Below are positions 8,706 through 64,000 of a stretch of DNA of 64,000 bases, piece by piece. Each line of letters begins with the position of its first letter. The stretch's first letter is position 1. The translations under genes and the position numbers were made by a program. The notes beneath the pieces were generated by a model that searched no databases, was not told the origin of the DNA, and saw only the letters and a list, made by a program, of their open reading frames with translations. The stretch covers positions 62,001 through 126,000 of IMG/VR virus record IMGVR_UViG_3300042010_000106; one strand, 5' to 3'.

Positions 8706-10709
8706 ATGAAAAACTTTTCTGTTTTCGGTAAAGCAGTTCACAGCGCCTACGCCACCATTCTGCAAAACGACGCAGGCCGTAAGGATTCCGTTTTCGTGGT
8801 GGACATTACCGGCGACGAATTGTGGGCGCACTATCTCGCATCTTTCCCGGAAGGCACCAACCCGATTTTCCGCACGCGCACTGAATACGATTGTTCGTGC
8901 TGCCGCAACTTCATCAAAAACATCGGCGCGGTTGTCAGTATCAAAGACGGCAAGTTGCAATCGGTTTGGGATATCGAAATCGACGACGAACTTTTCCAGA
9001 CCATCGCCGATTCCATGTCGAAGCTCGTAAAGTCGCTGAACATTGCTGCACCTTTCATGGTGAGCGAACCGGCGTACGGCGCTGAAGTGACCCACCACAA
9101 AGACGAAACGTGGCACCACTTCCACGCAAAAGTGCCAACCATTTTCATGTGGAAGCACAACGAAAGCAATTACATTGGCGAGCGCAAAAACGACTTCGAA
9201 GGTTTGAAGCGTTCGATCAAAGAAATCGACAACGATGCAATTGAACAAGTGGCCGATTTGATCGACCAAGATTCGCTGCACAAAGGCCCGGAATACAAAG
9301 GCAAAGTTGACCTGCTGCGTAAGCTGAAAGCGGCGTACGAGAAACTGAAAACCAAACGCGCACGTGAACTGTTTCTGTGGGCGAACGCCAAGCCGGGTAC
9401 GCGTATTCACAGCACCGTTATCGGTACGCTGTTGGTTGATCTTTCGACCGGTGAAGACCTCGAAATCGCCGTGAAGAAATTCGAAGACAAAGTGAGCGGC
9501 ACCAACTTCAAACGTTCGAAAGCGCTGGTCACTCAAAAGATGATCGACGAAGCGCAAAAGCTCGTTGAAAAGTTGGGCATCGAAGATTCGCTCGCACGTC
9601 GTTTTGCAGTGCGCGAAGATATCAGCGTTAACGACGTTCTGTTCGTTGATGGTTCGGTGAAAAAGAAACTGCTGGGCGGTGCGTTCGACTCGATCAAACC
9701 AACCAAGAAAAACGTTCCTGTTCTGACGGACTTGATCGAAGATATCAGCATCAAAGATTTCCTGAGCAAAGTTCTGCCGAAAGCGGATACGGTCGAAGTG
9801 TTTGTGCAGAATGAACATCAACCAACTTTCGTTTCGCTGATTGCCCCGGTGAATGCCGATTCGAAACCGCTGTTCAAATGGGATAACGGTTTTTCGTGGG
9901 CGTACACTGGTGACGCTACTGAATCCATCCGTGAGCGTGTGAAGAAAGCAGGCGGCAAAGTTGACGGCGATATTCGTATTTCGCTGTCGTGGCACAACGC
10001 AACCGACCTCGATCTGAGCCTGCACAAAAACGGCGCGCACATTTACTACCACAACCGTAATGAGTTCGGCGCTACGCTCGACCTCGACATGAACGGTATC
10101 GACAAGAAAGATTCCGTTGCACCGGTAGAAAACATTGTGTGGCCGCGTCTGGCAAATGCACAACCGGGTACGTACTCGATTGTTGTGCACAACTATGCCA
10201 CACGTGCGACCGCCAACGTCGGCTTTGAAGTTGAAGTCGAAGTGATGGGCAAGCTGTACAGCTACGAAAATGCGAAAGGTTTGCGCGACAACGAGAAAGT
10301 GAAAATCGGCGAAGTAATTATCGCGAAAGGTGGCGAAGTTACTGTCGTTGGTTTGACCGAAGGTGGAGCGTCCAATGAGAAATGGGGCGTGCACACCGAG
10401 ACTTGGACGCCGGTTGATTTGATCACCCGTTCGCCAAACTTCTGGAACGATCAGAAGATCGGTCACGAACACATTTTCTTCATGCTGAAAAATTGCGTAC
10501 GTGATGATAGCGCACGCGGTTTCTACAACGAATACCTGCGTGATGATTTGAATACGCATCGCAAAGTGTTCGAAGTAGTTGGTGCGCAAATGCGTGTGGC
10601 TCCGAACGACCAGCAACTGAGCGGCCTTGGTTTCTCGATCACCAAGCGTGACGAAATCAAAGTGCGCGTGAAGGGTGCGACTAACCGCGTTCTGAACGTG
10701 AAGTTTTAA
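8706..10709 (+). CDS. large conserved phage protein with N-terminal CSCC motif and C-terminal YfaP/DUF2135-like domain
   Basis: YDCSCCRNF; DIRISLSWHNATDLDL...IYY...LDLDMN...VENIVW...GTYSIVVHNY. Confidence 0.75.
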   Translation: MKNFSVFGKAVHSAYATILQNDAGRKDSVFVVDITGDELWAHYLASFPEGTNPIFRTRTEYDCSCCRNFIKNIGAVVSIKDGKLQSVWDIEIDDELFQTIADSMSKLVKSLNIAAPFMVSEPAYGAEVTHHKDETWHHFHAKVPTIFMWKHNESNYIGERKNDFEGLKRSIKEIDNDAIEQVADLIDQDSLHKGPEYKGKVDLLRKLKAAYEKLKTKRARELFLWANAKPGTRIHSTVIGTLLVDLSTGEDLEIAVKKFEDKVSGTNFKRSKALVTQKMIDEAQKLVEKLGIEDSLARRFAVREDISVNDVLFVDGSVKKKLLGGAFDSIKPTKKNVPVLTDLIEDISIKDFLSKVLPKADTVEVFVQNEHQPTFVSLIAPVNADSKPLFKWDNGFSWAYTGDATESIRERVKKAGGKVDGDIRISLSWHNATDLDLSLHKNGAHIYYHNRNEFGATLDLDMNGIDKKDSVAPVENIVWPRLANAQPGTYSIVVHNYATRATANVGFEVEVEVMGKLYSYENAKGLRDNEKVKIGEVIIAKGGEVTVVGLTEGGASNEKWGVHTETWTPVDLITRSPNFWNDQKIGHEHIFFMLKNCVRDDSARGFYNEYLRDDLNTHRKVFEVVGAQMRVAPNDQQLSGLGFSITKRDEIKVRVKGATNRVLNVKF

Positions 10710-59741: not shown

Positions 59742-60107
59742 ATGCTTACACGCAGACAGCAACAGCAGCGCAAACAAGCGAGAGAAAAAGAGGCGGCAGA
59801 AATCGCACGCTTGTCCAAGCAGCTAGGCCGCAATCCTGATGGGAAAGCCGTACGAAAAAAGGCAAAGGACAATGATTTATCTGTCGCTTACCGTTCGGAC
59901 GTGTCACCGTACAAAAGTCTCGCTGGCACAGTGTTAGACAAACCCGATACATTCGCGTTCGAAGTTGATGATTTCGAAATGCGCGAGAAGTTGGCTCAAG
60001 TGGAAATCGAACGTAAGAAAAAACGTATTGCGCCGCTCTACAACAAAGGCGGCTTGCAGTACATTACTGACGATATGGACTTAACGACATTAGGACGCAA
60101 GGTATGA
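59742..60107 (+). CDS. basic conserved phage protein (APxYNKGxxQYI motif)
   Basis: RKKKRIAPLYNKGGLQYITD. Confidence 0.7.
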   Translation: MLTRRQQQQRKQAREKEAAEIARLSKQLGRNPDGKAVRKKAKDNDLSVAYRSDVSPYKSLAGTVLDKPDTFAFEVDDFEMREKLAQVEIERKKKRIAPLYNKGGLQYITDDMDLTTLGRKV

Positions 60108-60709
60108 CGGATTCATTTACACACAGCACAATGCACCAAGTCGGTATGCAGATGATGCCTGTTTCAGAAGTTCGCAAGCTTTTAGAAAGTCGGTGCGAAA
60201 GGCTGACGGTCGATGACATTGCGAAAAAGCGTGTTGCCAATCGCATCATGCAGGCCCGCAAACGTTGCAAATTAACGTGGGATGTTTTGCAGAAGCATTT
60301 CGACGGTGTGCAATATCAGCGCGATTACGATTTGCGCACGTACGCCCGCAGCATTCAGCATTCGATTCTGAACGACAAAGGCCGCTGGTTGCCGAAATAT
60401 ATTTTCCGCGACCGCCCTGCACATTTGTTCTGGATTGAAGGCACCAGCCAAGCAGTTTTGTACAACTTCATTCCGCGCACCGATGCGAATGTGTACCTTG
60501 TAGCGGATACCAGTTTGATCGTTAACTACGACATTCTGTGCAACAAATTGCTGTTCGTGAAAGACATGCCTAATCGTTGTCGTTTCATCTGCGAGAACAC
60601 GGTCGTTTATCCGTGTGACATCGTACAAACCAACGATGCCGCGATTGCAGAACACAACGCCGAAAAAATTGCACACTTCGCCAAGTACAAGGAATTTACC
60701 AATGACTGA
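60104..60709 (+). CDS. hypothetical protein
   Basis: ATGA overlap. Confidence 0.7.
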   Translation: MTDSFTHSTMHQVGMQMMPVSEVRKLLESRCERLTVDDIAKKRVANRIMQARKRCKLTWDVLQKHFDGVQYQRDYDLRTYARSIQHSILNDKGRWLPKYIFRDRPAHLFWIEGTSQAVLYNFIPRTDANVYLVADTSLIVNYDILCNKLLFVKDMPNRCRFICENTVVYPCDIVQTNDAAIAEHNAEKIAHFAKYKEFTND

Positions 60710-61556
60710 TCAAGCCACCCGTGACGCCGACCGTGAATTGGATTTGGCGCTGGACGCAGAACTTCGCGCAGACACACAGGCAAGGAACCGCAAAGCTTTT
60801 ATCGAACAAATTGATCGTTCTATTCCTCCTGTATCTGAAGAGGCAAGGAACAATTTAATTGCCGATTACGACGATATAAATCGCACGTGGCAAGGTGATC
60901 GCATTCAACGCGACCCGGCTGATTTGAAAGACATGGGGCGCGATGGTGTCGTGGGCCGTCTCGGCGACTATTCGCGCATTGATGACCCGGAACACCGCGC
61001 CAAGCTCGACGCTGCTTTTGAGAAGCTGCAAACGTCCCTTGAGAATGGCCGCTCAAACGCCGCTGCTGAAGAGCGGGCAAAGAAACGCATGGAAGCCCGC
61101 CAAGCGTTCACACAACGCCTCAAAACGCGTGTACGGGCCTTCCTGTTCGCCGTGTGGTCGCTGGCGTTCCTGTGCATCGTCGGTGCCGGGGTGTGGGGCT
61201 ACTACAACTTCAAAACGATTGTGCCAGCGTGGGACAAATACACGTCGGCGCAAAAGAACTGCATTTTCAAAGTGGGTGAACGAACCGTCACCGGAACGCG
61301 CACCGTTTCGTATCGCTATTATCAGATTCTGAACTGGCGTGCACACGATGAAAGCACGGTTGAAACTGAAACACGTTTGGACATCAACGGTAACGGTATG
61401 ACGGTTATTCAGTACGTCGATGGCAAGGCTGAAAAGCTGGCAATTTCGGACGGTGAAAAATATCGTCCGTTGCTCAAGCCTGCTGAAAAGTATTCGTTCT
61501 TTATGGACAACGGCAAAAACTTTGCAGAGCTGTCGTTCAACGACATTTGCCGGTGA
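60702..61556 (+). CDS. single-TM membrane protein
   Basis: AAGGA RBS; central TM AFLFAVWSLAFLCIVGAGVWGY. Confidence 0.7.
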   Translation: MTDQATRDADRELDLALDAELRADTQARNRKAFIEQIDRSIPPVSEEARNNLIADYDDINRTWQGDRIQRDPADLKDMGRDGVVGRLGDYSRIDDPEHRAKLDAAFEKLQTSLENGRSNAAAEERAKKRMEARQAFTQRLKTRVRAFLFAVWSLAFLCIVGAGVWGYYNFKTIVPAWDKYTSAQKNCIFKVGERTVTGTRTVSYRYYQILNWRAHDESTVETETRLDINGNGMTVIQYVDGKAEKLAISDGEKYRPLLKPAEKYSFFMDNGKNFAELSFNDICR

Positions 61557-61806
61557 AATCCACACCGGGAACAAACTGGTGCCCTCAACAGCATGACCTT
61601 TCGACGGGCGGAATTACCACTGTCGATTGGTATGCTAGGCAACGCAAATTAAAACTGTCGCTTATTCTCGATTTGTTGAACGGTGTTAAATTTAATGGCT
61701 TGGGTATTGTTATAAACCATTACAAAGGTGGCAGGGTTCCATACGAAGCCAGCACCGTTCTAACAGTCGAAGAAATGCGAAAGTTGAATTCGTTCAGGAA
61801 ACGTAA

Positions 61807-62190
61807 ATGAAATGGAAGCACGGCTCTACCAGAAGTGTTTTGCTGATTGGTAAGTACGCGATCAAGTTTCCCATGATTAAGCACTGGCGGAATTTCCTGC
61901 AAGGTATTTTGTGCAATGACACAGAATATTCGTTCAGCCATTTGGATACGCCGCTGCTGGCTCCTGTGCTGTGGCGTTCGTGGGGATGTATCGTTATCGT
62001 CATGCCGCGTGCTGACGTGAAAAGCTACGACGCCGAAGATCGTTTCGCATATGTTGAAGAATTCTGGAAGCTTGTTGAACAAGTCGAAGGACTCAACAAA
62101 GACACGATCAAAAAGATTGTGGAAAACAAAGTGTGTTCCATTGGCATGATTAACGGCAAGCCTGTCGCCATCGACTACGGGATTATCTAA
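61807..62190 (+). CDS. minimal protein-kinase-like phage protein
   Basis: GSTRSV...YAIKFP, N-x-x-E, terminal G..NGKPVAIDYG. Confidence 0.6.
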   Translation: MKWKHGSTRSVLLIGKYAIKFPMIKHWRNFLQGILCNDTEYSFSHLDTPLLAPVLWRSWGCIVIVMPRADVKSYDAEDRFAYVEEFWKLVEQVEGLNKDTIKKIVENKVCSIGMINGKPVAIDYGII

Positions 62191-62838
62191 ATGAATCGTC
62201 CAACTCCTTACCGCCCACGTGTGCCGGATGACCTGTTTGAAGAGCTGAAAAAATTCAGCGACGGCACATTCAAAGGTTTGCATGAACTGACGCTGCGCTA
62301 CATTCGCGAAGGCATTGAAAAAGATCGCGCTGTGCAGGCTGGCAAAGAACGTAAAGTTCCCGGCAACGGGTATTTCCCATTCAGTGATGTCACGATCAAC
62401 AATTGGGCAAAGTATTACGGCATCGACGTGATGGAAGTTGCAGCCGCTTACCACGCAATGGAACATATCGCGCTCGATAGCGTTGATCGTGTGAACGGTG
62501 AATTCAGTCTGGACGGCCACGACATCAAAGGTTTGAACAAATTCTTTTTCGGCGACAATTGGGAAAAAGACATGCTGTTGCGCCAACTGGCTGCAATCGA
62601 CGCTGCTGCAAATCACGTTGTAGGTGCAGCGACAGAAGAGCGACCGGAAGAAAGATCAGATATTACCGTGGCGATTCTTGCGGAACGTTTGTCTGTTCGT
62701 GCTGCTGAAATCATCAAGTTCATGTTCAAGCGCGGCACACCGGCCACCATGCACCAATTGCTGAGTGATGCAGAAGTCGAACTCGTTACCAACGCAATGC
62801 AGGTCGTTCCAAAACTCGCCAAACGGACAAAGAAATGA
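62191..62838 (+). CDS. RHH DNA-binding protein fused to translation initiation factor IF2 N-terminal domain
   Basis: N-term [15 protein letters not shown]...[10 protein letters not shown]; C-term [34 protein letters not shown] matches pseudomonad InfB [34 protein letters not shown] (recalled). Confidence 0.75.
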   Translation: [215 protein letters not shown]

Positions 62839-63263
62839 AACCAGTTAAACAAGCCTTGTACAACAGCCGCACCGCTGACAAATTCGTTGTTCGTTTGCCG
62901 GACGGCTGGCGTGAAAAGATTGAAGCTTTTGCGCGTGTAAATCACCGTAGCATGAACAGTCATTTGCTGACCTATATCGAAGCGTGCCTGAAGTTGGAAG
63001 AGGCGGAAAACTTCGGTTTGTTGGAAGCGTTGCTGTCTGATGAACCGGGCGGCGCAATCGTGGTTGCACAAGGCCCACGCGTTCCGTACGCAATCAATAT
63101 TCCGGTAATGTTTGAAGGCCACGTTTGGCTGGTGGTAAAACTCAACGTTGAAGACGGCGCTGTGTGGGCGGATTTGGAGCGTACCGATTCGGAATTCGAA
63201 TACGATAACGGACGCCGTTGTATCACTTGCCTGCATAAACATTTGGAGCCGTTCGGTGCGTGA
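62835..63263 (+). CDS. amrZ: AmrZ/AlgZ-like Arc-family regulator with non-homologous C-terminal domain
   Basis: [42 protein letters not shown] vs AmrZ [42 protein letters not shown] (recalled). Confidence 0.85.
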   Translation: [142 protein letters not shown]

Positions 63264-63264
63264 C

Positions 63265-63579
63265 ATGGCGCTGTATGTTATTTGTCCCGGCACCGTGACC
63301 AGTCGCACGGACGGGCAAGAACATTTCGTAGACGAACGTTCGTTGATTTCGTTGTACGGTGTTCACCCTGCACTGTGCGTTGTGTATCCGCGCACAGAAG
63401 CAAATGAACGTGGCTGGCGAAAGCCGCCGCATGCAATGTATTTAGAGCCGCAATACAGCGGTGATTATTCCCTACCAATTTACTACGGGCCAAAATTCCA
63501 ATGGAAACTCAAGTCGCATATACCGGTACTTGCCGCCAAACTGCTTTCGGCATCAACGTTCCTGAGTTTGTTCCAGTAG
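63265..63579 (+). CDS. conserved phage hypothetical protein
   Basis: YVICPG.V.SRTDGQEHFV...LYGV...LEPQYSGDY. Confidence 0.65.
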   Translation: MALYVICPGTVTSRTDGQEHFVDERSLISLYGVHPALCVVYPRTEANERGWRKPPHAMYLEPQYSGDYSLPIYYGPKFQWKLKSHIPVLAAKLLSASTFLSLFQ

Positions 63580-64000
63580 CAGCCGCTCGCGTTTCGATGG
63601 ACGTAATCAATCTGCCGCATAACTGCGTGCCGTTGAAATACGAAGCCGGTAAAGATTTCTGCAAGGTTCTGCCCGAAGAAAGCATCGACACTTTGTGCTT
63701 TGTTTTCAAACTGGCTGGCGATTATCAGGACATCAACCTTGACGCCATTCGCGATTACATTGCGACTGTGGAAATCGACCACAACAAGTTTCACGTTTCG
63801 GAACGGGCGCTGCTGAACGAAGAAACGAAAATGATTCGGACTTTGTACGTTCGTTTCTACCGCAACGAAGATTTCAAATGCAAAGAACACCCGGAAATGC
63901 TGTTGGGTACGCCGTCCGGTATGTACCACTGCCCGTACTGCTGTGAAATGCAGTTGGCCGGTACTACGCACCTCGATCCAATGTTTGAAGCTGTTGTGGA
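63501..64000 (+). CDS. hypothetical protein with GMYHCPxC motif, truncated at window end
   Basis: my translation METQVAY...GMYHCPYCCEMQLAGTTH, open to the end of the window. Confidence 0.6.
   Translation, partial: METQVAYTGTCRQTAFGINVPEFVPVAAARVSMDVINLPHNCVPLKYEAGKDFCKVLPEESIDTLCFVFKLAGDYQDINLDAIRDYIATVEIDHNKFHVSERALLNEETKMIRTLYVRFYRNEDFKCKEHPEMLLGTPSGMYHCPYCCEMQLAGTTHLDPMFEAVV

Follow-up and report, generated by a model that had tools for sequence, protein, structure and literature searches.

The analysis of a 64-kb stretch of DNA (64,000 nucleotides, called the window below) revealed a gene for an AmrZ-like RHH protein of 142 aa (62835..63263, + strand, from the ORF list), in which a DNA reader of the AmrZ type is followed by a linker and a predicted small beta-barrel. 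Our preferred reading, whose chances we put at about even, is that the dimer of this phage protein reads GGC half-sites and acts on promoters of the host AmrZ network, the barrel taking the place of the AmrZ tetramerisation tail. The finding is a solid annotation and not a surprise.

The source contig is present in IMG/VR (UViG_3300042010_000106). Four contigs carry an identical target protein, two of them, of 312,325 and 312,503 bp, coming from two JGI metagenomes. Further metagenomes from rhizosphere and soil also contain this DNA, and the single RNA run contains 6% of the sampled words. The window encodes a virion structural protein (phrog_11065), which shows 52% identity to HRDY3, and a 667-aa protein with best matches in pf16, Lu11 and HRDY3 (55-57% identity). 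Relatives are detectable at the protein level only, and megablast of positions 60000-64000 against 50,697 phage records gave no match. The phage origin proposed in an earlier sequence-only reading of this DNA is supported by the 312-kb IMG/VR contig, by the virion structural protein and by the Pseudomonas jumbo phages that are its closest relatives. The element is an uncultured 312-kb jumbo phage, distantly HRDY3-like.

Pseudomonas is the most probable host. This is suggested by the relatives of the phage (HRDY3, Lu11, pf16 and Noxifer), by bacterial homologues of the target that are confined to the Pseudomonadaceae and by the rhizosphere and soil source. The G+C content of the window is ~49% and it contains zero tRNA genes. 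Pseudomonas chromosomes have a G+C content well above the 49% of the phage, and this difference counts against the explanation through host promoters. A nucleus-forming phage, which would favour a target in host DNA, was considered and dropped. A nuclear shell protein is present in Noxifer, but the chimallin matches listed do not include HRDY3, the cultured phage nearest to this one, and no place for it is left in the counts by host.

The target gene starts with ATG and its stop codon is at 63261-63263. It sits in a long array of small genes on the same strand, and coding in the window is on one strand. The ATG and the stop codon of the preceding gene overlap as ATGA. This upstream neighbour (62191..62838, +) encodes 215 aa; its N-terminal part is kept in close relatives and its C-terminal part is an IF2_N-like helical domain (Pfam IF2_N, E 4.7e-9). 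In the synteny comparison it is conserved and translationally coupled to the Arc-like gene in L169 and L170, and no match to it was found in the phage collection. On the other side, an ORF of 104 aa assigned to phrog_7644 (63265..63579, +; PHROG E 7.7e-17) begins 1 base past the target stop. The gene tables of L169, L170 and HRDY3 contain no called gene at this position. The next gene, of which the window holds the 5' part (63501..64000, +, from the gene table), extends beyond the window and encodes 207 aa in L001. It carries the Cys/His motif HPEMLLG...CPxCxEM and adjoins the Arc-like gene out to HRDY3, with 34-46% identity in L169, L170 and HRDY3 (BLASTP). A second AmrZ-like gene is absent from the window.

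Comparison with an 80%-identical orthologue (P0005) gave a dN/dS of 0.12 for the whole gene. Taken separately, the RHH domain had a value of 0.09, the linker 0.11 and the C-terminal barrel 0.14. The target is a genuine gene under purifying selection and, because dN/dS is low in each, the RHH and barrel halves are both functional.

The arm and RHH domain span residues 1-57 (62835..63005, +), as judged from the Pfam Arc match, AmrZ 3qoq, the mapped contacts and the invariant columns. Pfam Arc (PF03869) matched residues 11-55 with E 1.8e-14 and 53.7 bits, against a cut-off of 20.4. The best sequence match in the PDB was AmrZ (3qoq_A, E 8.6e-14, residues 1-57), the next being Mnt with E 0.04. Identity of the RHH domain to chromosomal AmrZ is ~60% over ~55 residues. 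BLASTP against an AmrZ orthologue with a typical AmrZ tail (P0037) gave 31/52 identities over residues 1-52, and the alignment stops there. P22 Arc and Mnt share the RHH superfamily with the target; the similarity is distant (Mnt E 0.04) and the recognition residues differ. Mnt, like the target, has a C-terminal domain added to the RHH, which in Mnt serves oligomerisation.

In AmrZ, K18, V20 and R22 contact the bases of 5'-GGC half-sites, Y11, S13 and R14 make the contacts of the N-terminal loop, and R28 together with S41, M42, N43 and S44 contacts the backbone (PMC3325190). Between the half-sites lies an A/T-rich linker of 5 bp, as in amrZ1, GGC-AAAAC-GCC (PMC3325190). Allowing for an offset of two residues, Y9, S11, R12, K16, V18, R20, R26 and S39-S42 of the target are identical to these contacts; the base-contact residues K16, V18 and R20, mapped from the AmrZ-DNA structure (PMC3325190), lie at 62880-62894 (+). 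The target thus has the same extended arm, RHH fold, K/V/R strand and arm Y/S/R as AmrZ (AlgZ) of P. aeruginosa (3QOQ), and the helix-2 N-cap S-M-N-S is identical. The sole change of a supporting residue among the DNA-reading positions is E25 of AmrZ to D23. In alignments of the target's family the contact positions are invariant. Since every published DNA contact of AmrZ is kept, the target is expected to read DNA with AmrZ-like specificity. The sequence-only reading had assigned an AmrZ-type arm and strand to about the first 50 aa, quoting the motif string KQA...HRSMNS, and this proved correct in view of the 3qoq match (E 8.6e-14) and the kept contacts.

An AlphaFold2 model was built with a 15-sequence alignment, as a monomer. 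It contains helices at residues 25-35 and 40-56 and leaves the N-terminal strand unstructured with low pLDDT; the ribbon is expected only in the dimer. Comparison of the target clade with chromosomal AmrZ identified eight fixed changes: M25W, V32F, E43H, I45L, R47Y, L48I, Q50A and S51C. All eight fall within the two helices of the dimer core, A and B, and leave the DNA contacts untouched. These changes argue weakly for an insulated homodimer. The RHH appears to have diverged within an old phage clade, and its behaviour may differ from that of AmrZ.

Maximum-likelihood trees were calculated from the 57 columns of the arm and RHH, with 96 rows and with 183 rows. The AmrZ-like subfamily, which includes the target, is split from the temperate-phage Arc-type proteins with support of 98/96. 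Comparison with generic Arc proteins had been proposed in the sequence-only reading as a check, and it places the target inside the AmrZ-like subfamily. The backbone of this subfamily is poorly resolved in the 57-column tree. The target belongs to a starred clade with 100/99 support, whose 15 members come from jumbo phages, HRDY3 among them, and from metagenomes; the Noxifer type neighbours this clade with weak support, and chromosomal AmrZ is found in a different cluster. We conclude from the tree that the target RHH represents an old jumbo-phage lineage of the AmrZ-like subfamily, with no recent capture of host amrZ. The domain is therefore no fresh phage copy of host amrZ, and the protein is not an AmrZ orthologue because the tail is missing, the gene is phage-encoded and helices A and B carry the eight substitutions.

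A search of 185,579 bacterial species genomes (one genome per species) found more than 586 relatives of the target. The best 80 of these are all from the Pseudomonadaceae (Pseudomonas, Stutzerimonas, Azotobacter and others) and are mostly ~61% identical over residues 1-57. Most of the best bacterial matches carry an AmrZ tail.

The C-terminal part of the target is of a different kind. The AmrZ tetramerisation domain (LSLHERELLQRFRQL...) is missing and a linker with a beta-barrel is present instead. The linker, residues 58-83 (63006..63083, +), is helical with low confidence (AF2 pLDDT 40-57); in the family alignment P0007, P0009 and HRDY3 have a ~65-aa coiled-coil-like insert at this position. 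The barrel, residues 84-142 (63084..63260, +), is modelled with pLDDT 84-93 and ends in a conserved L-E-P-F. Its model has four strands of at least three residues and a short helix, the confident core comprising ~residues 85-135. Clustering of the C-termini separated that of the target from the AmrZ-type tails, which are present in 97 of the collected sequences. The earlier statement that the remainder of the protein is unrelated to AmrZ therefore stands, given this separate cluster and the end of the P0037 alignment at residue 52. The description of a 'swapped C-terminus' holds as far as the tail is different; there was no recent swap, and proteins with these two domains form an old family of their own that has been conserved.

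Searches for relatives of the barrel located it in RHH fusions only. A barrel profile run against 1.84 billion representatives gave a near-full-profile match in only six clusters, all of them proteins of 142-209 aa with an AmrZ-like RHH at the N-terminus. Other matches to the profile, consisting of several short stretches in long proteins, were taken as spurious. On these profile searches the barrel is an orphan domain found solely in the RHH fusion. No Pfam family, including PF02559 and PF21196, was found in 14 C-domains of the target family at E up to 1. Sequence searches of the PDB with the barrel (profiles A3 and A4 and single sequences) gave a best E of 0.0054, to designed proteins, and EF-P at E >1. 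Foldseek with the target barrel gave weak generic SH3/Tudor matches, led by the eIF5A N-domain and the 53BP1 Tudor domain (E 0.02-0.1), with RapA further down (E 0.36). Structural neighbours in the ESM-Atlas (TM 0.59-0.68) included RapA-Tudor/SNF2 and UvrD-type proteins.

A similar layout is present in other jumbo phages. PaBG, Noxifer and a metagenomic group of 32 members have proteins built in the same way, in which a linker joins the RHH to a small beta-rich tail with hydrophobic-x-P-hydrophobic at its end. Homology of the target barrel to these other jumbo-phage barrels was considered, and the comparison gave no evidence of it: hhalign against the cluster-1 barrels gave a probability of 0.7%, and the PaBG-type tail falls in a separate BLASTP cluster. 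Jumbo phages have long retained an AmrZ-like reader with its DNA contacts frozen, while the tail was replaced by various small beta-barrels. The repeated joining of such a reader to small beta-barrels in jumbo phages goes slightly beyond the searchable literature.

The PaBG-type relative P0060 gave a confident model (pLDDT 88-96). The top fold matches of its tail were RNA-polymerase-binding Tudor domains of PcrA/UvrD (5dma, 7egs_B, 9dqs, 6yi2), Mfd and CarD/CdnL. Together with 6ac8 and 4xax_B, these matches had E values of 2e-3 to 3e-2 and TM scores by target of up to 0.81. P0060 also had a sub-threshold match to Pfam CarD_TRCF_RID (E 0.026) and weak language-model neighbours in the PcrA_UvrD_tudor family. 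The modelled resemblance of the P0060 tail to RNA-polymerase-binding Tudor domains is a lead that applies to P0060 and bears on the target as a hypothesis only; this possible likeness of the PaBG-type barrel likewise goes slightly beyond the searchable literature. The target barrel may resemble the Tudor-like RNA polymerase binders (CarD/TRCF RID PF02559, the C-terminal Tudor of PcrA/UvrD PF21196 and the N-terminal Tudor of RapA) in being a small five-stranded barrel of similar size; the likeness comes from the model, the target barrel being without a Pfam match and its fold matches generic. It would be a bold and rather improbable extension to regard the jumbo-phage barrels, that of the target included, as RNA-polymerase-binding Tudor-like modules, with a protein that docks at host GGC sites and holds or blocks RNA polymerase. 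If true, the phage would have combined the DNA reader of a host master regulator with a polymerase handle in the style of CarD/UvrD. A search of the accessible literature for the combination of RHH and Tudor in phages found no instance.

Phage-borne AmrZ homologues have direct precedent, and the target adds to them. Borges et al. described AmrZ homologues on 14 Pseudomonas phages and plasmids, with perfectly conserved DNA contacts; complementation of a delta-amrZ mutant succeeded with five of six mobile-element homologues, and type I-F CRISPR-Cas was repressed by the homologues from PaBG, phi3 and JBD68 (bioRxiv 10.1101/673095). The early RHH protein Gp53 of PhiPA1019 binds the promoters of fleQ, pslA, amrZ and ftsZ, with effects on motility, biofilm and cell division, and is not equivalent to AmrZ in function (2026 paper, PMC13650114). 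The published targets repressed by phage homologues are CRISPR-Cas, motility, biofilm and cell-division genes (10.1101/673095; PMC13650114). The GenBank annotation of the PaBG gene reads 'alginate and motility regulator'. The sequence-only reading had treated the idea as new; the homologues of Borges et al., Gp53 and the PaBG annotation precede it. Its proposal of an effect on the AmrZ network agrees with the action of related phage proteins there (10.1101/673095; PMC13650114), and nothing points to alginate specifically.

The target shares with the PaBG, phi3 and JBD68 homologues and with Gp53 its location on a phage and an AmrZ-like RHH with kept contacts; AmrZ itself is encoded at a chromosomal locus controlled by AlgU. 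PaBG is a jumbo phage too, and its protein has the target's layout of RHH, linker and small beta-barrel. The experimentally tested homologues (Borges et al. and Gp53) are all outside the clade of the target, whose RHH groups with HRDY3. Protein XDJ14992 of HRDY3 (313.7 kb) and the metagenomic P0002-P0009 share both the RHH clade (100/99) and the barrel family with the target, and the HRDY3 gene has the same downstream neighbour. XDJ14992 is 205 aa long, has a coiled-coil-like linker insert and is ~39% identical overall to the target; it is annotated solely as an 'Arc-like DNA binding domain protein'. Viral copies of a bacterial master regulator are of interest as a means by which phages take over defence, motility, biofilm and cell-division circuits. 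The target widens the known set, from phages of P. aeruginosa, to an uncultured 312-kb phage lineage of soil and rhizosphere.

Under our preferred reading, two target chains would form an RHH dimer that places its beta-ribbon in the major groove and reads 5'-GGC half-sites like AmrZ, as expected because its backbone contacts and the base-reading K16, V18 and R20 are identical to those of AmrZ. In an infected Pseudomonas cell the protein would occupy promoters of the AmrZ network and shift their expression in favour of the phage. The small beta-barrel, present instead of the AmrZ tetramerisation tail, would link dimers into higher oligomers or bind a partner. Which host is infected, which promoters are targeted, in which direction they are regulated and what the barrel does are inferred; this picture is supported by the fold family, the kept contacts, the purifying selection on both domains, the best bacterial homologues being from the Pseudomonadaceae only, the Pseudomonas-phage relatives and the tested homologues from mobile elements. 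If the barrels are oligomerisation or RNA-polymerase-binding modules, this would explain how the operator code of a host is re-used with a different output. Such compact portable regulators could be a potential source of tools for Pseudomonas.

P22 Arc and Mnt are temperate-phage repressors that control the phage's own immunity region. By analogy the target could control the transcription of its own phage, for example by shutting off or timing early or middle genes, and its likeness to AmrZ would then mean no more than common descent within an RHH subfamily that is widespread on mobile elements of Pseudomonas. We hold this to be the main rival, possible but less likely than action on host promoters. 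The location in a same-strand array of small genes, the translational coupling to the upstream neighbour and a downstream neighbour kept out to HRDY3, as for a core regulatory module, would all fit such a role, as would the old phage-specific clade of the RHH and the many differently tailed paralogues on Pseudomonas elements. However, the window contains neither an enrichment of amrZ1-like sites nor an operator-like repeat near the gene. The motif GGC-N5-GCC occurs 16 times in the 64 kb against 12.95 expected, which is no excess of the amrZ1 type, and with an A/T-rich linker it occurs 0 times against 1.9 expected. Scans for repeats, promoters and terminators around the target gene gave nothing beyond chance. 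There is thus no sign of phage-borne target sites in the 64-kb window; the scan extended over ~20% of the phage's 312 kb, AmrZ sites carry little information, and such sites may exist elsewhere on the genome. In addition, host promoters are where the tested homologues from phages act (10.1101/673095; PMC13650114). Regulation of phage genes and of host promoters may coexist.

A role as a poison subunit had been put forward in the sequence-only reading, in the form of dominant-negative heterodimers. The phage chain would then form mixed RHH dimers with host AmrZ that lack the tetramerisation tail, and the host regulator would be disabled. The ~60% identity of the RHH domains would allow such pairing, and the AmrZ tail is required for tetramerisation and function according to Xu et al. 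2016, as cited in PMC13650114. The eight fixed changes in the dimer core nevertheless look like a repacked, self-specific interface, and a pure poison subunit would not need fully kept DNA contacts. We therefore regard the proposal as unsupported and very improbable, the helix changes arguing, weakly, for an insulated homodimer. Least credible of all would be an antitoxin of the RHH type that forms a pair with the 104-aa ORF, or a ParG-like centromere-binding partition protein. An RHH gene followed directly by a small ORF does have a toxin-antitoxin-like layout, and some of the PHROGs that match the RHH are labelled 'partition protein ATPase'. On the other hand, the 104-aa ORF is not called in L169, L170 and HRDY3 and so is not an obligate partner, the nearby genes include neither a ParA-type ATPase nor a Pfam-recognised toxin, and the partition label belongs to families that match the RHH part alone. 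Both readings were rejected, as conserved partners are lacking.

AmrZ-like RHH domains are also present on many viral contigs of 240-310 kb, and many paralogues with other tails occur on Pseudomonas elements. The more distant family members P0010 and P0015 are surrounded by small genes without annotation, with MvaT-like genes close by; one of the two is on a contig of 1.13 Mb. These settings near MvaT-like genes point to Pseudomonas mobile elements.

The Arc-like gene lies in a long run of small genes on the + strand. Upstream, and translationally coupled to it, is a gene for a 215-aa protein (window 62191-62838, +), whose C-terminal part is a helical domain resembling IF2_N (E 4.7e-9 in Pfam, which passes the threshold). 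A search of 50,697 phage records returned no matches to this protein. Its orthologue in L170, the corresponding locus of a close relative, is only 138 aa long and is devoid of the IF2_N-like domain.

Downstream, a 104-aa ORF assigned to phrog_7644 (window 63265-63579, +) starts one base past the end of the Arc-like gene and overlaps the following gene by about 79 nt. No counterpart was found among the called genes at the same position in the relatives' loci L169 and L170 or in the Pseudomonas phage HRDY3, so this ORF may have been inserted recently, or its gene call may be uncertain. The gene that follows (window 63501-64000, +, continuing at 10667-11290 of L001, a locus that runs past the window end) is a conserved neighbour, adjoining the Arc-like gene in genomes as distant as HRDY3 (34-46% identity). 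Its product carries the motif HPEMLLG...MYHCPxCxEMQxAG, which is possibly metal-binding.

Not all AmrZ-like proteins of viral contigs group with the phage clades. In L093, L118, L123 and L126, viral contigs of 50-270 kb that are mostly of jumbo-phage origin, the RHH domains of some beta-barrel-tailed proteins cluster with chromosomal AmrZ (support 88/75). This grouping is a hint that capture happened more than once, or that there was host-phage exchange. Genes for two more distant members of the Arc-like protein's two-domain family, P0015 and P0010, were located at 8001-8504 in L167 and L168, contigs of 1.13 Mb and 159 kb, respectively. Both are inside long runs of small unannotated genes with MvaT_DBD genes nearby, and the 1.13-Mb contig could represent a chromosome island, or else a Pseudomonas mobile element of very large size.

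The 312,503-bp contig shares its source metagenome with a Noxifer-like phage, IMGVR_UViG_3300042013_000067 (loci L091 and L175; 283,622 bp), whose nuclear shell protein is 86% identical to that of Noxifer. This phage encodes its own AmrZ-like protein, with a tail unlike that of the Arc-like protein. Therefore, two unrelated jumbo phages, each with an AmrZ-like regulator, are present in one sample.

Elsewhere in the window, the contig's precomputed Pfam matches include a 168-aa protein with a NADAR domain (PF08719; 55717-56223, +), and a NUDIX protein is encoded about 7 kb past the window end (L001 17234-17665); both may have nucleotide or ADP-ribose-processing roles. A 667-aa protein (window 8706-10709, +) matches phrog_1735 with E 2.7e-250. 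Its relatives occur in 537 phage records, including phages of Salmonella, Klebsiella, Bacillus, Caulobacter and Pseudomonas, and are annotated as a putative DNA-directed RNA polymerase in one record and as hypothetical in others.
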